Positions 74 to 13,389 are shown, counted from the stretch's first letter. The stretch is DNA of 64,000 nt from Perkinsus chesapeaki ATCC PRA-425 (GCA_013115145.1 JAAPAO010000026.1:1-64000); one strand, 5' to 3'. Program-made: numbers and translations. The notes: generated from the letters alone by a model not told the origin.

Positions 74-2105
74 CATTCCGCAACTGAATACAAATAGGGC
101 AAATAGAGAGTATCTTCTGTTGACTATGGGGAACAGTAATGTTTTTAACGGTGATACCTCTGGAATTGGTGTACCTGATTATTATTACTATGCATCATCA
201 CTGGGGTGGTGAATGATGATGAGATGTTACCTGGTATAACATCACTTTTAGGGCAAGGTGGCAATGCTAAATACAGGAATGAACCCATAATTGAGAGCAT
301 ACCAGATAACCAAAATGACAGTAATAGGTATCTGATAGGTAAACTACAACATTCTACATTACTAAATCACTAGTATCATTACTCGTTGGCATCAGTTAGG
401 TTCTGAGCTCTAGAGGTAAAAAGAAGTCCAAGAGCAACATTTAATAACCCAGCCCCCACATAGGAGAAAAAATATGTACCAAAAAACCTGATAACGACCA
501 GAATTAAGTGTAATATTGTCAATTGGATATTACAATGACATATTCCGAGAGAGCATTGAGCGAAATTGGCCACCACCATGGGGACCGTCTCGATCATTGA
601 GACTATTGTTATCATTTTGGTCGTTATCATTCACTACACCATCCAAGGCACTTGATCTTGTTGGATCACGACAGCAAAAGTAACTATTAAAATAAAGAGT
701 ATACATCAGTTACTATCAGTAATACAACAACAACTACTACTTACCCAGATCTACCTATTATTATGTATGATCCAACAACATCTAATGGATATAAAAAAGC
801 TGCTATACAACATGCTAATATATATATAGTCTGACCACGAAATGCTGTAGCAGCACCGAACACCAGATAGTATCTATTAGCACATTTAACGTACGTATAG
901 ATGGTGTTCTTACTACCACTTACATATGAAAAGAGCTACCTAGACCCCCAATAAGCAGTAAAAACTTAGCCTGGGTATTAATCTCAAACCATCTATGGAT
1001 AATAGGATATATCATACATATCAATGCTTCTATACCCAACCTAAGTAAACATAAGTAATAATAATAACAACATACAGTACAATGATGAGAATAATTATTA
1101 TGTAAAATATGATGATGTGTTTTTGTCGTTGATGGTATTACATAAGCATGCCTCTTACTATGGCTGCTTGACCGTACGCTGATACCTCATTAACATAAGA
1201 TGAGCGTAAACCAGCTTCAATAAGTCCTTTACATATTGATAGAACAATTCTGACGACAACAGCATATAAAAGACTAATAGTAAAGATTAAGATGTATCTT
1301 CTTTATTACATAATTTTGAGCCAGTATGTAGAATCACGATAATAAGGGCTAACAGGAGGAGGAGGGAGGGCATTGAACTCTTTATCTTCATCTTCCTGCT
1401 GTTGACGACGTTGTTGACCATATTGTGACCAAGTTGATGAAGACCTCCCCTTCAAACCAGCAGCAGTTTCTATCTCAGAACTTTCTGTAGTAAACCGATG
1501 CCACGAACTCCGGCTATCAGTACGGGCGAGAGAGCTGGTTTGACTATCACGTCGTAATCGTTGATAATAGTATATGCTTGCACTGCTGCTCTGTCGCCTC
1601 CTTGTATTATCAAAATCATATACCATTTCATCCTCGCAGATAGATACTGAACGTTGTGCCTGATATTATAGTAGACTCAATGTGAAGTGAATGTATAATA
1701 TAAGTTACTCTATCATCAATTGGTGCACTGCTCCTTTCATGTAAGGTTTCTACTCCTTCAATCAACCTTCGTTTCTTCCCTCTAACTGCTGCTGCTGTTG
1801 CTAGTGATGGTGGTATTAATGGTACACCACTTACAGTAGCTCTTCGATTGAGATTGTTAGGTATTGTTGTAGGAAATGGTGAAGCTTGAATTCCATCTGA
1901 CATAATTATAAACCACCGTACAAGTAACAAATATACCGAAATGTTATTTACCATCACAAGGAAAAGATGGATTCGGCATTGCTGGAGGTAATCCATTTGC
2001 CAATACGTCCTCATCGGTACCGTCTGATGATGATGACGAAGAAGAAGGATATGAATTTGCCTTATAATTATTTGATGTTAGATGTCTGTGATGGTCGGAG
2101 GGCAT
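70..2105 (-). CDS. Multi-pass membrane transporter-like protein, paralogue A (MFS-like?), 3' part runs off the window
   Basis: Spliced exons give MPSDHHRH...MVYDF...YWLKIM, GLIEAG, RWFEINTQAKFL, AFLYP, CRDPT, RFFGTYF...GAG and PPCPKSDVIPG. These motifs recur in the same order in paralogues B and C. There are many hydrophobic segments. The family was not identified with certainty. Confidence 0.7.
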
Positions 2106-4084
2106 TGACGATAGAGAAAGCTAATGATACAAGACAAGAGAAAAAAGACGGCTATATTGCACGGGTATCTCATATCAGCGATGATGATAATCATCATGCT
2201 TATAATGTACAGCATGATGATAAGAAGCGGTATCATTATTGATTGCAGCAGCAGCAGCACCTAGTAGCACAAAGCAACCACTAATAACAATGGTCTATAC
2301 ACAGTACTCAACAGGTACATAACACGTTCCGAAAATAAGTGAATGCTAGCCAGTAACACATTGAATGAATGATAATAATATAATTGGAAGGATCATAATG
2401 ATGATGATGATGAGGTGGATATAAGGTGAGTAATCTATAATGACGACCAGCTACTCTTTAGCGTAAATTTATAATATACGATAAGTCATTCCCACTGGTT
2501 ACAAACGATGTTGATGATGACGACGATGTGATACAATAAAATAGTCAATCAGCTAGATGAAAATCGATCATGATTTATTGCCTCTGCTTTTTATAGTCAA
2601 TGAGCCATACTGTACTCAATGGCAAAAATGATATAATGGAAAGTACCTAACATATATATCAGTTGTTGGTAACATACAATATAACTTATATACCAATAAG
2701 ATAATTGCGGCTATTATGTTTTCACCCTGGCAATAGTCACCAGTTATTTTGCCGATAATTATGTCTATGATACTTTGGAGAACAAACCCGAAGGATCTGA
2801 GCCCTTTAATATGGGCTGATATTTGTAAATGATATCTGTGATAAAATGGTGAATAATATGAGGGGAAGATTATTGTTACGGAGTAGGTTGATATATTTGA
2901 TGAACTGCTGATGGTAGATGTGCTTTAAAGGGCATTAAGCCCATTCCAGTGAGAATAATTGATAACGCCACAATCAAGTAATGATAAATCTCTACGTTAT
3001 TCACTTGTGCCCAATCATCTATACCATCTTCATCCACCTGAATCGTAACTTTAATATTTTTATGATAACATTTTGTAATATCACAGATTTAATAAAGTTG
3101 AGTGTCCCCAAATATACCCATCCATCAGGACCAACATTGTCAGTAACTGCTGCAGCTGATAGTACAATAGAATATGAAAGAGCCAATATTAGAGATATGA
3201 TACCAAATACGAGAACCTATAAAACAGTAATATTATAATGTACCACATTGTTATGAACTCACAGCTTTAATGGTGAAATAACCCTTGTAAACAGCCAATC
3301 CTAGTAAGAATGATATTACACCGTCAACAAATAAAGCAAAACCTGTAACCAAACCAGAGCTCTTCGGACCAATACGAGGTGTTGATATGTATAATACGAA
3401 ATCAATATAAACATAAGCTTCAACCTGACAAGGAATAAAGAAGCATCGGCGTCTAGGCATAAACCGATTGGATTGGATCTCCACAATATCTGATATTCTG
3501 TGAACTACGCAGGACTTCTGATGTAATTCCGTGAATGCTATATTCTTATGAAGGGTCAACCAACGTACACCAGCGTACTAAAGGCCAAAGTTTTTCCATC
3601 AGACTGTAGGCCAATGAAATGCACAACTGAAGAAGTGAAACTTACCATTCCACATAATACAAGTAGGATTGCATATGGGCGAAAGCGACTATTAGTGAAT
3701 GGAAGAATGACAGTTTTCCAAGGTGATACATATGGTGTAGGAGTGCCTGATAAAAGAATGGTCCGTAATAGTAGCAATTCTTTCATTGTAATCTTACCAG
3801 GAATAACATCACTACGTGGACATGGTGGTATACCCAGATAACAGAATGCTCCAACTAAAGATATCATACCAAGAGACCAGAATGCTAATATTGTATATCT
3901 GAAATTGAGGGTATACCAAATTGATGGGCATGTAGTACTCGCCAAGGTTTAGGCTCTGAGCCTGTGACTGTATTATAACGCCTAATATTATCAATAATAT
4001 CCCTGCACCAGTATAAAACCCAAAGTATATTCCGTGAAACCTGAAAATAGGTATTATGTAATATCGTGGTCATAATCCATTGGT

Positions 4085-6070
4085 AGCTTTTAATAAAGTG
4101 TACGAGCTCTACAAATGCGGTACCTAGACTACTTGAGGAGTTTCTCGAAACGAGGAGCTTCGATCGGAGTTCGATGTCGTTTCTTTAACATAAATACAGG
4201 TCACGCGAGCTGTTGCGTTAGAATTGAAGCGTACCCCAAAAACGCACTTACTCGGTGAACGCAATAAGATTAGCCTGAGATTGTCAGGCTGACAATAAGC
4301 CTGTTATGGTTATCCAGGTTGTGATCCACAACTTGTGGGTGCACTATGATTCATATACGATTGCCGCTTCGTACACCAAGTGCGATCCGTGAGACTCTCA
4401 CGGTGAGAGTCATACACCAAACGTTTATACAGAGTATATTTCATACAATGCCAAAATCCATACACTTAAGTTTCATTCTCGCCTAGTTTTTAAATTGTAT
4501 ACCTTATACTCCATTCCAAATTTGAATCTACGCTTCATTTGTTGCGCCTAAGGATCGAGTCTCATAGCCACAATTCGATCCATAGACTACCATTGGCTTA
4601 GCGCTCGACATACTCGTCAACATAATCCACTTCAATGCTTACTGTTTACTCGAAGTGTGCCACGCAGCGTAGCTGAGATGCTCCAGAGAGTCCCCGAGCA
4701 CATGTAATAAGCAGCTCTAACATTCAGGTCAGTATAGCATAGTGGTAATGTACAATTCTAGAATCTGGAAGGGCGCTGGTTAGATTCTCGTCGAGAATTT
4801 CTCGAGTGATGAGGATTGAAAGCCAGCACTGCTGAATCAGCAGGTTCAGGTAGAGGAACTCTACGACCTGCGGGCACTATACTGGGTTCAGCAGTTGATT
4901 CAATCAACTTGATTGATCTGTACTGACAGTACAGTACTGTCTACTTTTGTGCATGACGTACGAGTGATTGTGGTGTCGGCTACGTATCTTAGCGTCACGC
5001 TAGTAGCTTCAGTATTAATCATTTATATGAATACTTACGTAATTATTGTAGCTGTTATTATCTTACATCCTTCATAAGATAGACGGTGTTTGTTTATAAG
5101 TCTCACTAATCATCAAACCGTCATAGAACTGGCCCGAGAATTTTCGGAACATGTCGCAGAGCGGCTAGTTCACGCATCATGTTGCCAAACCTTCCTAAAG
5201 CAACGTGCAACTTGCACGGAATGAAAATTTATAGCGTCGAGGTGTATACGAGAATGGTGCGTATGAAGTTGATACAGTGTAAGAATCTAATGTGTAACAA
5301 TTTGTCGTGTATGGTATTACAGTGTATGACCTGGTGGGGTATGAATCGAAGTGTTGGATTTATATGCATCCACATTGCAAGCACTGTAGCATTGCAGGCA
5401 GTGCAAAGCACGTAATGTCCGACGTGTGATGCTTTCACTGCACTCGACTCATTTGTGCGAGTGCAAGTGGCCATTGCGCAAGAAGCACTCAACTCACTGC
5501 GCGTAATACACTACACATGCGACCAATTTGGGCGAAAACCGCCATATAAATGCATTGGAGGGCACGCAGTGCTTGGAAGTGCAAAACCACTACAACGGCA
5601 CGATGCGCTCGCCCGGGAATTGCTAGCTTGTGTTACTGAGGAACGCTGAGGATCGGGCTAGGAATAAGAATTGCTAAAGAGCTGCATTTCTGTACGCAGG
5701 TCGCTGGAGCGATTGATTTTTTCCTCTTCTATTGCGTAGGCTTGTTTGTGTGTCGCTCGCTCGGCTGCCGTCACAGCAGTAGTGTGTCTCCAAGCCTGTG
5801 TGATAACTCTGTCTGAGTGTTACCACGTGTGACTACTAGCCATTCTATGTTTGGTGGATGCGCTGTCAGCGCAGCGCTGAGCGACACCACGATTGCGCGT
5901 TCTATCAATGCCCAAGGGTGGAAAGTGTTGCGTTAGAAACATGGGTGGGATTAAAATTTAATCCCCTTGAAAACCTTCCATTTAATCATTAAATGAAAGG
6001 TTTGCAAGGGTTTGCAGTGAAAATGTAGACTTGTGCGGAACGGCTATCACTCTAGACTCGGTGTCCCATT
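4085..6070. mobile_element. ~2 kb foreign insert in paralogue B, possibly a decayed non-LTR (CRE-like) retroelement
   Basis: Absent from the equivalent position of paralogues A and C and lacks the microsatellite-rich intron style. A broken + strand frame reads CPTCD...CDQFG...CIGG...RHDALAREL, resembling the CCHC region of RLE-type non-LTR elements. No clear termini were found. Confidence 0.35.
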
Positions 6071-6813
6071 AACGTGAAATCTGGTAAGCGTTTCTATGAA
6101 ACAGCCGGGTGTCTATGCTCCATAAAAAGTACGAAGGAGGTCCCGCAAGAAGGAATAGATGGACAGTTCCAATCCACAGCTCTAATAGTCCAACTCTGGT
6201 CACGGGTAACGATTACGCCCCTTTTCATGGATGTTGCATACTTCATTCAACACGATTGTTACCTTGCTAGAGTTCTTCCTAGCCTCTCATCTCCGCTCAT
6301 TCGGCCATCACTATATCTACGAGCAATACGTAGGTTCGACAACGATGATGACGGCGCTTCAAGTTGTGGGGAAATATTATGATCATCATTTGTGGGGTCA
6401 TGCACGCGGAAGTAACTATAATACACCATAATGTTGAACGCTCAATTAATGCGATGATTTCCTACGCAGATCTCGCAACCATAGCGAACGCTCCTATGGA
6501 TGATAGTGGGTATAATAGGCCGGCAAGACCATGATTAATGATAAAGATAGCTACACCACCAGGTGCCCAGGATGTAACACTGTTCTGCCATATAAAGTAG
6601 TATCTAAGAACTGTTAAATACCTATTGCTGTTGTCCCTTGTCGTGATATATTATTATTCTTACATGTATATTGGCACTGAGATTGCTCCAATGAAGAGCA
6701 AAAACTTAGCCTGAGAATGTAACTCAAACCATCTGAAGCATAATGGTGTCAAGCAATAGGTGACAATCTCCACTGAGTACCTGGGAGCGACAAGAAAAGA
6801 GCTAAACTCCGCA

Positions 6814-6990
6814 CGGGTAGCATCTGTCGAAGATAGGGTGTCCAAAATTCTGTCGCTTAATCAAGCATACCAATCGATTCCCCATGTTCTAGGGACTTCA
6901 AAAATGGATTTCTTAGAGTTGGCTTACATCTGTATGATTTTTTATTGTCACATATAGAAATGGCGCGCAGAATGTAAAAAGCGCGCGCCC
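6814..6990 (+). repeat. Left terminal inverted repeat
   Basis: CGGGTAGCATCTGTCGAAGATAGGG...GCGCGCGCCC, inverted at 12632-12806. Confidence 0.95.
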
Positions 6991-7292
6991 GATATAAGTT
7001 GCACACCTCAATTCCACCGGCAAACCGACGATACAACAACACAAAACACAAACTTTGAAGCCCAGACGGCTTCAACTTATGAATTCTTACAACAAAACGA
7101 AAAAAAAACGGTTAGTGACTCGAGTCCGACGAACTACCATCTTCATCTGACATCGCAAGCGCCAGATGTTGAATCACATTCACTGGCTAATATGCTTATG
7201 CTGGTGTCAGACTCAGACCTGTCAGTTTCAACTTTCCCGATCTCTCGCTCTTTTGCCCTCTCAGCCTCATCCCACCTCAAGTTCCAGTTATA

Positions 7293-9768
7293 CTACACCA
7301 TGCAATCAACAAGCCGATCTGGAAAAGCTTTGTTTTCCGGGTTTACTTTGAACCGTAAGTTCCATATGCGCTGGAGTCTCGCATGGAGAGCTTCCCCGGA
7401 CTGCTCCGAAGAAAGGCCCAGGCCAGCTTCTGGCACCGACTCGTAGTTCAATAAATACTCTTTCACATGGTGAAGTACAACGTGAACTTTGAGAGTGCGT
7501 ACTAGACTAGTTGCATCCCATGCAGAGCCGAACCTCTCGATAGACCGCTCCCATCCATCTACTCTGTAAAGTCCAAGACACTTCTCTTTGAACTCGTGAA
7601 AAGCCTTCAATGCATTCACCAACAGAGTAGCCTTGGGAGAGAACGGTATCTTGTCATCCGCGATAACGTCAAGTAGGCGAGAGCAGCTGTTACCCTCGAG
7701 TGCGCCTTCAAAGTAGGCTGAACGCCCAATGTTGTTATCGGCAAGGGCCTTGCAGTGCCTGGTATATAGTGATCCTTTGCTGGTGCACTCGTCAGAAGGC
7801 CTTGCAAGGCTGTACAACTTATTCACAATACCAAACATCAGATGCAGAGGCGGGAGAGTTAGAAGTTCAAGAGGAGATTTGTCCCATTGTATCACTGGCT
7901 GGGCGACCACGCTATGAGCTCCATCCTTCAGATCCTGCATATGCCTTGTCCAAGTTCTACGATGCCCTGGTTCAGCTGTGTCTCGGGTACTACAGCAGAA
8001 AGGGCACGACAAGCATCGGCGAGACCTTCAAATCACACGCAATTTGTTTCGCCATTCCAAGGTGAACCATCTTCTTGAAAGCATAGCGGAGCGTTACGGT
8101 GGTGAAATCGACGAAAGATCAAGAGAGTGAAACACCCGATGCCCCGTCACGCACGCGCAATGTTTCGACACAACCTGTCGGTCGCATGCGTGCAATTTCT
8201 TAGCGACGCCGATCGATATGACTAGCACGAAGCTGTTGCCAACAACCATGTTTCATGCGGAGCAGAAATGTACCGCTGGCATAGGTTGATGATTTTAACC
8301 ACTCCCCCCCCCCCGATCCGGGAGATGTGCACGGGTACATCAATTACAGCATAGCCGAACGATGTACGCGTGCGCATAGAAACATCAGCGAGTAAGGAGT
8401 TACCGCTAGGGCAACAGAGTTTGTCCCTCGGTTTCCGACCCAACCGGATCGACTCCATCACCCGCTGTGTTTCTCCTATCCCACACTCTCGTGTGAGAGG
8501 AGATTTCATTGATGGAATCGCAACCAAAGATCTGTTCCAGATTATGCCTTGTCTCCGCGCCCTCACCCATACCAATGACGAAGTTCTTGAGAACACTATT
8601 AGGGGCGGGGATGTACTTCGATCCTTCCTCCATGGTCACGATGTTGACAGATACCTTGAGGAACTGCTGACCACCATCAAACTGCAGTTTCAGCCTAGTC
8701 ACGCGGTTAGCTTCGTTACCAGTCACCACACCAAATAACGCCTCGACATCATTGCATATACCAAAAGGGGTAGAGATTGGATCAGCCTGAGTGTCTGACT
8801 GCAATAGAAGCTTTTCCGGCCGAAATAGGTGACCGAAAATTTCCCATCGTTCCTCCCATGCATTCCTCAGACCACCCTTGGGGAACTGAATACCCTCACG
8901 TCGCAAGACTTTGCAGAGTTCTCGAGCACTCTTCTGACCGAGTCCCAGGTGTCCTAGGCGCAGAAGATCTCGTGCCCCCTCGCGACTCAATTCAGTTGAC
9001 TTCAGGCGAGGTCGATAGGAGACTGGGCATAATGCAAGGAACTCGTTAGAACCCAGGGATACACCAGGAAGGACCAGGAAGGACCACTCGTTAGAACCAA
9101 GGAAGAGCCGAAGGATGAGAGCCACCGGCTTCTGTTGCAGCCTCCTCGAACTTCTCCTTCAGGCGCTGTGCCACCATCTTGTCAACATACTTCCGGGCTT
9201 TCGCCCTTTCAGCAAATATCTTGCCTGCTGCGTGAGGACGCTTCAGAGCCAGCTTGCAGAGCTTGTCGTTGTGCTCATTCTCTGGTAAGCCGCACCGCGT
9301 GCATATCTTCTTGATGGGCGAGTGCTTAGCAGGTCTACCGGGCTTGGGTGTGTCGGACTTGAACTTTTCCTTCTCGTTGGATAAGCACTTGGAGGCAATG
9401 CAACATATCTTGCACCGATTACCCTCAGCACAAACTACAGACGTTCGGGTCTCAACAACGTCATAGTCCCTTGCGAGGCTGTCGTAGCACTGGCGCTTCT
9501 CCCGAGCCCATATGCCGTAATCGGTTATGCCTCTCTCAAAGTCGCCCAGCCGAGTGCTACACGGGTTGCAGAGCACCTTAGGAAGACGAATGTTTGCCAA
9601 CTCCCGTTTAAAGTCGAACTGATAGAACCTCAAGGCTCGGTCGCATAATTGTGCGCTCGGCGGAGACCTCTTTGTTTGTCGCCTTACCAGTTTAAGCCGC
9701 GTGAAGCAGAACCGGCAAACGCAGTACAGCTTACTGATGTGGTAGTCATCAACAGCAGGGGTGGGCAC
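7293..9768 (-). pseudogene. Chapaev (CMC superfamily) DDE transposase, disrupted
   Basis: N-terminal H-x5-CxCRFC...LPKVLCNPC...C...CKIC zinc motif. Core motifs LKLQFDGGQQFLKV, IACDLK, CPFC, PPLHLMFGIVNKLY, LKVHVVLHHV and SEQSGEALH. It has a frameshift after ACDLKV, a stop in MV*YN and no in-frame ATG. Probable introns lie at ~9040-9125 and ~8070-8490. Confidence 0.8.
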
Positions 9769-9771
9769 CTC

Positions 9772-9920
9772 GATCCGGTCCGGTCAGTCCGGTTTGTCCG
9801 GTTTGTCCGGTCCGTCCGTCCGGCGGAACGGAGCCGACCGGATTAAGCAACCCGTCTTGAGTCCAGTCCGGTTCGGGTCTGTCCGGTCCGATCCGGTTAG
9901 TCCGGTCAGTCCGGTCATCT
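9772..9920. repeat. Array of TCCGG/GTCCGG short repeats
   Basis: About a dozen TCCGG cores with short spacers, directly 5' of the Chapaev frame. Confidence 0.85.
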
Positions 9921-10289
9921 GGCTATGGTGCCGTTCGTTGCCAGTGCATCTTTTGGGCGCGCGCAATCTCTAGTAATGCAGCGCGCGCCTTAAATGGGAT
10001 CTGTGTGATTCACATTGCGAGCAGATAATACGCCGACCAAATTACGCATAGTATGATATTATTCTTGTCGAGTTGGGTCAAGCAACGGCTGCTTTATAAT
10101 TCGCATCGAATCATTGGCTGTGGTTAACTGACTCCTTCCATCGAATTTCTGCCAGCAGCAGCCCTCCAAACGCAATGTTAGCTAGCCCCCTACCCAGTGG
10201 CACCCCAAATGGGTCCCCACCCACCTTAAGGAAAAGTAGTACGCAATCTACAGGGTATCCGTTCCTCGGTAAATTTCAGCAGGTAGACC

Positions 10290-12400
10290 GAGTAAAAGGC
10301 AAAAAATGAGAAGGAGCACTATTCCGGACCGTTTTACCTTGGAATTCGCGGACCAGTTCGAGAAAATAGAAAACGGCTACGTTGAATGCAGAAGATGCGG
10401 CTGAGAGGTCAGATTTACACATGGAAGTTACAAAAATATGATTAATCATAAGTGTGAGAATGCGCGCCGTACACGAAAACGAGGGAAAACCGATGCGGAG
10501 GGATCTAAAATGATGGATCAATTTGTTGAAGAAGGCTTTCACGAGAAGACCACCGAGCTTATTTTGCAAATGGTGAGTACCATCTTCCGGTCTACTTAGT
10601 AGACTCTACTAGCGTGCTCTCGCCGCTAGGTTGATTCGAAATTTTCGAAGATGTCAGATAATTACCGACTCCGTACCACCGTGCATAGTCGAAAAACGTG
10701 GGTTTCGTGATTTGCTTCAACACTTAACAAGGGGAAGTTACACATGCCCATCATCAAGAACAACAAGAAGGTGAGTCCCTATTGTCAAGCCCTTATCATT
10801 GAGTGGCGCAGTGTTAGAAAATTGGATAAGCTGCATGAACAATGCCAGCAGAGTACGAAAGACAAATTATCTCCCGATGTCGTGTGCAACGCAGTGTCAT
10901 TGACAGCTGACGTATGGACGAGAAAACATAGAAGCTCCCTCTTGGGTGTCATGTGCCACTATCGGCAAACTTCAACCGTCGACTTTAATCAATCGATCGA
11001 TAAGGTTAGAATAGTTTGAAAACGTTGGAAAGGCTGGTTGGGTAAGGTTGTCCGGGCCGGCGACCTGAAGACGGCAGCAATAGCCTTGCACCCTATAAAA
11101 GGGTCCCACACCGCAGAGAAGCATTTCGAAGTGCTCACGGGAGCCATTAGCAGAATGCAGCAACTGGACAGGGTAATATATGATGATCGTTGCAGCACAT
11201 CGATAATATATGCACTGCTAGTAGGTTTATTTTATTGTGACTGATAGAGGGAGTGCCATCAAGAAGTGTTGGACAAATGAAGAACTACTCTCCAACGAAT
11301 TACCCAAGCTGCAAGCATAGCTACCATGTGCAGCGCATTCTTTACACTTGTGCGTGTGTAATGCACTAAGTATGTTTCGGAAGAACCCTGCTGCATTGGC
11401 GAAGCGAAATGGTTCAGATGGTATAGACAATTTGATTGATGGCCTAAATCCACCTCAACCCACAAATAGTGATGATATCGCAAGCACATCAGATGATGAA
11501 GAGGAAATTTCAAGTCTTTTTGAAGGCTATGGCTCCGAGAAGTCAGATGATGAGGATGAAGATTGGCCAGAGGAGGGTAATGATGCAGCGTGGGAAGAAG
11601 GGGTGGAGCTGGTGGGGCCAAACTCCAACTCCCAAACGGTAGTTGAGCGAGCTATCGACAAAACCAGAAATATGGTTAAGCTTTTGCGTAAATCTGCTCT
11701 GGCCCGAGATACAGCTGAAAATATCAGAGCTAGAATGGAGAGCCCTCCCCCGATGCCCTTGGCTCTTGATGTACGAACAAGGTGGAATAGTTGCCTCCAC
11801 ATGATAAAAGAAGTCCTGAAAAATCAGGCTACATATGAAAGACTACACAGTGAGGTCCGTCGGATCACTGACAAGCATTCCCCCGTGCGTAAAATAATTA
11901 CTCAGTGTGATCTGTCTGCAATGGATTACGAGACCCTCACGAGCCTTGCTCTGTGTTTGGAGCCTTTCAATGAAGTTACATCATATCTGGGAGTCACTAA
12001 GTTCAGCACGTTGCCAACTCTACTAATTAGCATTATGCTTGTCAAATCTTTCCTTGTACAATTGGAGAATAGCAACGAGCTACAACGGCAGCACAGGTTC
12101 TGTGCGAAGTTACTCCCTGCATTGAAACAAAAACTGGGCAAGTATTTCAGCTACACAACGGAAAATGACTGGGTGGTCTGTGCATGTTACTTGAATCCAG
12201 ATAGCCGAAATATGAGCGAGGCTTCTGAGGCGGTGGCCCCGGAGTATACCATCACTGATGCGAGGGGACGAAGCGCGGTTTTCGCTTGCTTACAAAGCTT
12301 AGGTTTACTTGACGACGAATCTGGTGGAAATACGCTGGCAGCTACTTCTGATGGAATCGAAAGATTGGACATTGGCGAGAGTTCGATGTCAGGTATATAA
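10290..12400 (+). pseudogene. hAT transposase, disrupted and C-terminally truncated
   Basis: BED-like CRRC...NH.C, PPCIVEKRGFRDLL, LTADVWT...LLGVMCHY, SHTAE, VTDRGS, PCAAHSLHLCV and LDVRTRWNS. In-frame stops lie in the BED region and before PCAAH. No C-terminal dimerisation or catalytic Glu motif is seen before the right TIR. Confidence 0.88.
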
Positions 12401-12631
12401 GAGTATTATAGCGGAACACGGAGGAAGTTCGGGGGGGTCTGCAGCACCTTGCGCAGAGCACTAGCAAGGTGCCTGCGCAGCACGTGACGCCCATAACGAG
12501 CGGGAATGTTAGGTATTTCGTGAGCTTAGGCCTGTGTTATATGTCGCTACGCATTGTAGACGTGATTTCCGGTTGTTTAACGGCTTCGGGAGCTTTGGGT
12601 CACCCTTCAGACGGTGTCGAGAGTCACTACT

Positions 12632-12806
12632 GGGCGCGCGCTTTTTACATTTTGCGCGCCATTTCTATATGTGACAATAAAATCATACAGATGTAAGCCA
12701 ACTCTAATAAATCCATTTTTGAAGTCCCTAGAACATGGGGAATCGATTGGTATGCTTGATTAAGCGACAGAATTTTGGACACCCTATCTTCGACAGATGC
12801 TACCCG
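12632..12806 (-). repeat. Right terminal inverted repeat
   Basis: Reverse complement of 6814-6990. Confidence 0.95.
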
Positions 12807-13389
12807 CTTCCGCAGTCTTTGAAGTGAGTAACAATGCAATAACAGCAAACGAAACTTACGGGACGATCCTTCCAACGAAGGATAAGCTGCCGATTACTGC
12901 GACTTCTAAAAATTGTGCTCCACGTAATGATGCTTCAAGAAACATCTTAGCAATACCAATGAATATTCTGACAAAAGTTATAATGCATGAATGGGTCTTA
13001 TTTTTATTACACCAGCTTAACCCAATATGTAGCATTTTCATATTCTCCTATTCTTCTTACGTTACCACCACTTTCATTATTACTCCTATTGCTGGACGAG
13101 AGCCTTCGCTGTTGCCGATTTGCAGATACAGACGACGAGGATTGGCAGTTGGATTGGCCGTTGCCACCCTCAAGTGTGACAGTGCCCCCTGCCCTTGTTG
13201 TAGTCGCCACCGCTGCACGTCGGTGGGTGATATTTCCACTTGCAACAACCAGAGGTACGCGTTCCGCTGTATCCAGTCTCACATGGTTAGTTAGTTTGGG
13301 CCCTTGGGGCTGCTGGCATACCCCTTCTGAGGTATAACCATCAGTGTGCTAATGATACGAGCATCGGTACCAATAACAACATACATATA

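Follow-up and report, generated by a model that had tools for sequence, protein, structure and literature searches.

A stretch of 64,000 nucleotides from Perkinsus chesapeaki ATCC PRA-425 (GCA_013115145.1 JAAPAO010000026.1:1-64000; the whole stretch is called the window below) carries at 6812-12808 a pair of long terminal inverted repeats (TIRs), between which two transposase genes of different superfamilies lie on opposite strands, a Chapaev-type gene on the minus strand and a hAT gene on the plus strand. The question raised by this locus is whether the two transposases belong to one mobile element and travel together. A preliminary description of the locus had let both frames diverge head to head from a spacer of about 500 bp, and had considered either a nested composite moving as a unit or a stable two-transposase family. 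The limits of the element given there are exact, and the two superfamily assignments hold, as does the decay of both frames; both transposase genes are dead. Most probably, however, 6812-12808 is a single dead Chapaev element whose open reading frame (ORF) was split after codon 13 by a hAT fragment, in a one-off nested or captured insertion. The two transposases are not partners.

The Chapaev gene and its interruption at codon 13

The public annotation lists a 627-amino-acid gene at 7143-9749 (minus) and a 342-amino-acid gene at 11372-12400 (plus). The latter product is encoded, letter for letter, on one public contig, JAAPAO010000026.1, at the window's own coordinates, and the JAAPAO accessions belong to P. 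chesapeaki (PMC11513098). The Chapaev ORF on the minus strand starts at 12372 (ATG 12372-12370), runs for 13 codons to 12336 (MSNLSIPSEVAAT) and continues from 9755. The first 13 codons (12336-12372) match the N-termini encoded at three other loci, L007 (MTTLSIPPEVAAT; a Logan contig with 64% amino acid identity), L008 and L005 (MSDLTIPSEVAAT), and the decayed body of the gene, from codon 13 onward, occupies 7143-9755. Between the two parts lies a hAT-bearing block of 2,580 bp (9756-12335, plus), which interrupts codon 13. Removal of this block in silico gives MSNLSIPSEVAATVDDYH... / MSNLSIPSEVAATVDDYHISKLYCVCRFC, in register with L007 and L008, and the joined ORF, MSNLSIPSEVAATVDDYHISKLYCVCRFCF..., can be aligned position by position to the N-terminal sequences of L007 (MTTLSIPPEVAATVDDYHLSKLYCVCRFCF) and L008. 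Because of this alignment we place the beginning of the Chapaev ORF beside the right TIR and regard 9756-12335 as the interruption. The remaining 12373-12631 (minus), from the right TIR to the ATG, represents the Chapaev 5′ untranslated or promoter region; it is conserved to about 80-86% in L005, and its equivalent in L007 measures about 255 bp.

Joints between distant parts of the element were found by aligning Logan contigs to it, where X1 is the source sample and X2 a run from another study with the same organism label. One X2 contig joins 9755 to 12336 and is free of hAT sequence. At the block borders 9756/12335 neither an 8-bp nor a 4-bp duplication was found; the borders read ATCAACAG (the 8-mer of the left flank) and AAATACGC (12328-12335). 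The head-to-head appearance of the two genes is therefore due to an insertion nested in the Chapaev gene near its start codon: 13 Chapaev codons (12372-12336) lie beyond the hAT gene, and what had been taken for a spacer, 9756-10305, forms the 5′ subterminal part of the block.

The assignment of the minus-strand gene rests on its relatives and on a family profile. The frame is broken over three phases, and searches of Pfam, NCBIfam and PDB sequences with single pieces of the element gave only weak matches, to zf-AD (E=0.1) and, for the hAT frame, to PF14372. With the C-terminal piece of the Chapaev gene as query, exhaustive phmmer searching gave 475 relatives, many of them 650-750 amino acids long and matched at their C-terminus. 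Thirty-three full-length relatives were aligned and share, as invariant features, D...D...PCxWC...PPELHLxLGxVN...HxxxxH...SEQxxE together with four N-terminal Cys/His clusters. The profile of these 33 proteins maps onto the window at 9744-9145, 8951-8496 and 7919-7296. On the minus strand of the window we find a Chapa-like zinc-finger region (CVCRFC, 9706-9723; CNPC, 9559-9570), the two catalytic Asp motifs (FDGGQQFLK, 8655-8681, for the first and ACDLKVS, 8020-8040, for the second), the C(2)C motif CPFC (7995-8006), PPLHLMFGIVN (7821-7853), the H(4)H motif HVVLHH (7467-7484) and the catalytic Glu motif SEQSGE (7392-7409). The profile also matches, over the stretch between the second Asp and the Glu, amphioxus RAG1L (6b40, E=4.5e-4) and vertebrate RAG1 (E=0.002-0.06). 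It gave no match to the solved Transib transposase, and the Chapaev relatives gave none to the Pfam CACTA families.

For the N-terminal part a structure model was predicted from the window (mean predicted local distance difference test score, pLDDT, 82). Its matches among solved structures are all ZAD domains, and weak (E 0.75-2), and its ESM Atlas matches are to the RAG1 N-terminal region, with a template-modelling (TM) score of 0.60 by the matched row. With moderate confidence, this model points to an N-terminal Chapa zinc-finger domain that is NZD/ZAD-like. Chapaev transposons were introduced by Kapitonov & Jurka 2007, as cited in PMC4411706. They are defined by a Chapa/NZD zinc finger related to ZAD, a core distantly resembling RAG1, and the C(2)C and H(3-4)H motifs (PMC4411706; bioRxiv 10.64898/2026.01.24.700457; PMC12730594). 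Because the features of the minus-strand gene equal this published definition, the gene is, as judged by its sequence, a Chapaev-type transposase (CMC clade, RAG1-related) of a cut-and-paste element.

The gene carries at least five lesions, one of which is the hAT block at codon 13. Another is a foreign block of about 410 bp (8092-8501, approximate borders) inside the ORF just upstream of the second catalytic Asp. At this site an intact relative from P. marinus (P0002) has 90 nt versus about 495 nt in the window. The foreign block is a multi-copy genome repeat: contig depth over 8092-8501 is 700-4000, versus 77-110 for single-copy parts, and variant joints occur within it (8121->8411, 8282->8410 and 8279->8372). 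No clear target duplication was found at the borders of this repeat; a possible 10-nt inverted pair, CACGAGAGTG (8493) / CACTCTCTTG (8120), is seen on the minus strand. The frameshift at about 9094-9125 corresponds to a 31-nt indel in comparison with a 9%-diverged copy in run X2, about 32 nt are deleted between ACDLKVS and CPFC, and a premature stop stands at 7290-7292, where the reading of P0002 continues.

In the source sample 8465-12652 is covered by one identical contig, and among the X1 contigs no second copy of the hAT block or of the Chapaev 5′ half is present at 80% likeness or more. Extra copies of the TIRs and of the Chapaev 3′ part do occur in X1, including the joint 7873->12336, which is that of L005. 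At this locus (L005:1615-3164, contig 733) the genome has a second copy, which is shortened to 1.55 kb by an internal deletion and bounded by 190-nt arms of its own that are 98% identical. Its deletion junction reads GCC A·CT·CTT GAA with a 2-nt microhomology (L005:2096-2099 versus window 9753-9755 / 12336). The site which this deletion shares with the block insertion reads ...GCTGCCA/CTGTTGAT...; its coding strand, CACTGTT, resembles a heptamer of the recombination signal sequence (RSS) type in six of seven positions, with the break 2 nt inside. We had at one time taken L005 as proof that the composite moves, and dropped this idea: only Chapaev sequence is common to L005 and the window, and the supposed hAT tail of L005 is the Chapaev 5′ region.

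The Chapaev gene is uninterrupted and free of hAT sequence in L007, L008, L009 and one X2 contig, and no hAT pieces were found in the Chapaev loci L002, L004, L006, L009 and L010. Other copies of the block, of its arm or of the 410-bp repeat are absent from all fetched loci. A word-indexed protein search for relatives of the hAT ORF returned only the ORF itself, and no hAT relatives were found in metagenome contigs. Among the contigs and the ten fetched loci, the situation is thus essentially the one named beforehand as speaking against a dual element, namely no other dual copy and Chapaev elsewhere without hAT. The single X1 contig over 8465-12652 and the hAT-free L007, L008, L009 and X2 contig disagree with a stable two-transposase family. 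Of the composite moving as a unit, the nesting stands, whereas the joint movement does not, as L005 contains no hAT-specific DNA.

Terminal inverted repeats and target-site duplications

The left TIR (6812-6990, plus) begins with the tip CACGGGTAGC and ends at its inner edge in a GC hairpin (6959-6990). The right TIR (12632-12808, minus) has the tip AGCGGGTAGC, in which the consensus CA is altered. The arms, described beforehand as near-identical and about 175 bp long, indeed measure 177 and 179 nt and are 97.7% identical to each other, with a single 2-bp indel; no further copy of a TIR arm or of the element interior is present within the window. Directly outside lie two identical 4-bp copies of TCCG, the target-site duplication (TSD), at 6808-6811 and 12809-12812, the right copy being read directly from the sequence.

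From flank to flank, the window copy ends as AACTCCG/CACGGGTAGC...GCTACCCGCT/TCCGCAG and L005 as GAATAT/CACGGGTAGC...GCTACCCGTG/ATATGC. The distant full-length relative L009 reads AGTT/CACGGGTG...CACCCGTG/AGTT. A perfect 4-bp TSD is therefore present in three elements of the family (TCCG in the window, ATAT in L005, AGTT in L009). The termini of the element are 5′-CACGGGT...ACCCGTG-3′, of the CA...TG type in all three; at the right tip of the window copy the last two bases are off the consensus, and the CA is lost. The TSD of hAT elements is 8 bp long. For the CMCT clade TSDs of 2-5 bp are described (PMC12730594), and the CA...TG tips and the three perfect 4-bp TSDs fit this clade, not hAT. 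An 8-bp TSD, ACTCCGCA / CTTCCGCA (6/8 matching), by which the outer ends would have been assigned to hAT, was dropped once the second copy had fixed the tips as CAC...GTG with a 4-bp TSD.

The same arm is linked to the Chapaev gene at other loci. In a 783-bp contig of P. olseni (L003) and in the P. marinus locus L006 the 3′ end of an orthologous Chapaev gene is followed by this arm, and in L007 about 255 bp free of hAT sequence separate the inner part of the arm from the Chapaev ATG downstream of it. On these sequence comparisons, the outer TIRs, the termini and the 4-bp TSD all belong to Chapaev, and the window element would be moved by a Chapaev transposase. In L006 a gene with an Integrase_H2C2 domain (L006:7222-8878) occupies the place of the Chapaev 5′ two-thirds, which suggests that this copy was truncated by a retroelement insertion or a rearrangement. 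One X2 contig joins the inner edges of the left and right TIR directly (6997->12629); this joint indicates derivatives like miniature inverted-repeat transposable elements, which consist of the two arms only. In the TIR bins the contig depth is 4-17x that of single-copy sequence.

Recent mobilisation in trans had been proposed on the basis of the high arm identity, and this is unsafe. When the arms of the window (6812-6990, 12632-12808) are compared with those of L005 (L005:1615-1797, 2982-3164), 17 substitutions separate the two copies yet are common to both arms of each copy, while the arm-to-arm differences within the copies number 8 and 2. In L009 the arms, about 790 bp long, are 100% identical. 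The arms are presumably homogenised by gene conversion between them. As they evolve in concert, arm identity cannot date the insertion, and the right tip of the window copy has in addition lost its CA.

L009 (L009:3877-8856; ENA ERZ25072730, ctg83102) is itself a nearly intact full-length relative with 37-46% amino acid identity. It has the tip CACGGGTG, the TSD AGTT and two ORFs (5883-6995 and 6983-8143) with one frame change between them. Its left arm holds an extra sequence of about 530 bp inside (4459-4987), and further imperfect inverted repeats (4521-4986 / 10487-10926) enclose the element.

The inserted block and the explanations for it

The block starts with a left arm (9756-9990, plus). 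It has the tip CAGGGGTGGGCACC, arrays of GTCCGG at 9778-9917 and a GC hairpin at 9955-9990. Nine of the 11 GTCCGG hexamers of the window lie in the two arrays, which have a 9-bp period, and the 8-mer beside the tip, ATCAACAG, fits the pattern nTnnnnAn. Both this target pattern and subterminal repeat arrays are known in hAT elements (PMC10368747). The hAT transposase frame, decayed and 3′-truncated, follows at 10306-12335 (plus) with its ATG at 10306. It encodes a BED-like finger (CRRCG, 10387-10401; HKCE, 10447-10458), which is split by a TGA stop at 10402-10404, and further motifs, picked out by eye: SLTADVWT (10897-10920), CAAHSLHL (11327-11350), a helical insertion domain and YLNPDSR (12188-12208). 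The annotated 342-amino-acid product has a precomputed PF27039 match and a weak one to PF14372 (E=0.07), and the atlas matches are to hAT/ZBED clusters (structure TM 0.78 by the matched row, feature score 0.94). Because of the Pfam matches, the feature and structure matches in the atlas and the motifs, the plus-strand frame is assigned to hAT, as a transposase of the RNase-H-like type that includes a helical insertion domain. An AlphaFold model predicted for this piece from its sequence alone was too poor (pLDDT 40) and was not used.

The block stops about 42 codons past YLNPDSR, and from 12336 on the sequence belongs to Chapaev. A C-terminal hAT domain with an S-E-R motif, which we had placed past 12336, was wrong, as the Chapaev N-terminus and 5′ region had there been read in antisense. 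The PF05699 dimerisation domain has no match in any frame. A search around the hAT frame gave no candidate for a terminus pair with an 8-bp TSD bracketing it, and no inverted copy of the block tip or of the GTCCGG array exists at the other end. The frame has stops at 10402, 11017 and 11242-11247 and at least three frameshifts in addition to the 3′ truncation. The block is thus a one-ended, 3′-truncated hAT fragment.

A sequence likeness links the block to the Chapaev ends. The pattern GCGCGC-N(6-24)-GCGCGC occurs three times in the 64 kb (6963-6988, 9957-9988 and 12634-12659), with zero expected by chance. The three sites are the inner edges of both Chapaev TIRs and one place in the block, about 320 bp upstream of the hAT ATG; in about 100 kb of other loci the hairpin is found only in the TIRs of L005. 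The hairpin may serve as a promoter element or bind a protein. Among P. chesapeaki, P. olseni and P. marinus no other piece of the TIR is as well conserved as one part of the hairpin, GGGCGCGCGC. A degenerate internal right TIR, which we had considered at 9943-10140, was dropped, because the hairpin alone is in common.

How did the block enter the gene? We infer that it came in by a non-canonical route, for instance when a hAT fragment was taken up at a double-strand break or through an aberrant one-ended event, rather than by normal hAT transposition. The piece has kept a terminus-like 5′ end, the subterminal array and most of a BED-finger transposase gene. Since it is without the 3′ end, the C-terminal domain with the last catalytic residue and a TSD, it could not move or work alone after arrival. 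Further decay would then have followed, in which the Chapaev gene gained the repeat of about 410 bp, indels and a stop, and the hAT gene its stops and frameshifts. It is rather unlikely that a complete hAT element transposed into codon 13 with an 8-bp TSD and that a later 3′ deletion removed exactly the second TSD copy. The left tip CAGGGGTG, which fits the hAT consensus YARNG, the flank ATCAACAG with its nTnnnnAn pattern (PMC10368747) and the subterminal GTCCGG array are what such an event would leave. However, there is no second ATCAACAG, the corresponding 12328-12335 being AAATACGC with 3/8 positions matching; no hAT terminus with an 8-bp TSD brackets the frame, and the deletion must have ended exactly at the TSD border to leave a seamless ORF.

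The block could also be a fragment of a hybrid element, with a hAT gene behind Chapaev-type ends, one nested in another and the chimeric family residing elsewhere. Its tip, CAGGGGTGGGCACCT, is identical to the Chapaev tip CACGGGT-AGCATCT in 11 of 14 positions, and the GC hairpin, confined as it is to TIR inner edges and the block (elsewhere to the L005 TIRs), lies about 200 bp from the tip just as in the Chapaev arm. On the other hand, the tip fits hAT too, and neither a second arm, nor a 4-bp TSD, nor another copy was found. Moreover, the sequence of about 190 bp from tip to hairpin is unlike the Chapaev arm: in a shuffle test block 9756-9954 scored 6 versus 4.6 +/- 2.8 in shuffles, that is, without homology above shuffles. 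We regard this hybrid origin as improbable, and equally so that a hybrid block came to lie at a codon-13 breakpoint which is a site cut by the RAG1-related Chapaev transposase itself. If true, the hybrid origin would mean that in nature one cut-and-paste system had mobilised or captured another. It is very improbable that the composite is, or recently was, a functional two-transposase family which moves as a unit. The near-identical arms and the intact 4-bp TSD would agree with such a family, as would the variant hAT contigs of X2 if they come from a second copy; yet arm identity is accounted for by concerted evolution, the Chapaev ORF is destroyed by the hAT block within it, the hAT gene is without its catalytic C-terminal part, and one copy is present in the source sample while all examined relatives are free of hAT. 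Two cooperating transposases of different superfamilies would be a new kind of element; the evidence is that of an ordinary nested or captured insertion, and the claim should be dropped. Finally, that the block is a large Chapaev intron holding a hAT relic is hardly credible. Its length of 2,580 bp is divisible by three, and once it is taken out the frame is exactly restored. However, on the coding strand its ends are GC..TG, no GT..AG alternative is in reach of a joint that has no positional ambiguity, relatives have no intron at the site, and the joined form occurs in a run recorded as DNA.

Several observations weigh against a one-off insertion of a hAT fragment as we propose it. The block has no TSD while the Chapaev sequence around it is intact to the nucleotide, which is unlike normal hAT transposition followed by random truncation, and the hAT-less X2 joint has only 28 nt on its shorter side. 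The break of the L005 deletion lies within 0-2 nt of the insertion site of the block in codon 13, a coincidence that is unexplained and would be expected in about 0.2-0.4% of cases for random breakpoints over about 2.5 kb. Given the 11/14 identity of the tips and the family-specific GC hairpin, the left arm of the block may be of other than purely hAT origin. X2 also contains contigs that are 2-5% diverged from the window over 10899-12060, beside contigs identical to it; the diverged ones may stem from an allele or from a second dual copy. The search for dual copies rests on assembled contigs and the ten fetched loci.

Comparison with known systems

The element resembles the known Chapaev transposons (CMC/CMCT) in its core distantly related to RAG1/RAG1L, its Chapa/NZD-like finger with a ZAD-like fold, its CA...TG termini and its short TSD. 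It differs in its host, a perkinsozoan alveolate versus animals in the papers cited above, and it has long TIRs (about 177 bp, and about 790 bp in L009) with arms in concerted evolution. In a literature search (Repbase lies outside it) no paper linking Chapaev and Perkinsus was found. The locus documents a Chapaev family with a RAG1-related core, a Chapa zinc finger, defined ends and a 4-bp TSD in an alveolate that parasitises bivalves (Perkinsus). Its long arms, which evolve in concert, are a warning against dating insertions of DNA transposons by arm identity.

The block, a relic of a BED-finger hAT family in P. chesapeaki, is comparable to Hermes and Ac (PMC10368747). It shares with these hAT elements the BED-like finger, the DxWT and CxxH-type motifs, the helical insertion domain, a CAG-type tip, a subterminal repeat array and the nTnnnnAn flank. 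It differs from them by having one end, no 8-bp TSD, no C-terminal dimerisation/catalytic domain and a frame broken in at least five places.

Nested transposon insertions and the capture of filler DNA at double-strand breaks place one element, or a piece of one, inside another. The arrangement in the window is like these in that the host element is inactivated and the captured piece is truncated and without a TSD, and unlike them in being seamless, with a breakpoint within 0-2 nt of the independent L005 deletion. ProtoRAG and TransibSU (PMC4411706) also combine a RAG1-related gene with a second gene on the opposite strand within one TIR pair. There, however, both genes are intact and the second one (RAG2-like) is a cofactor, whereas in the P. 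chesapeaki element the second gene is an unrelated, truncated transposase inside the ORF of the first.

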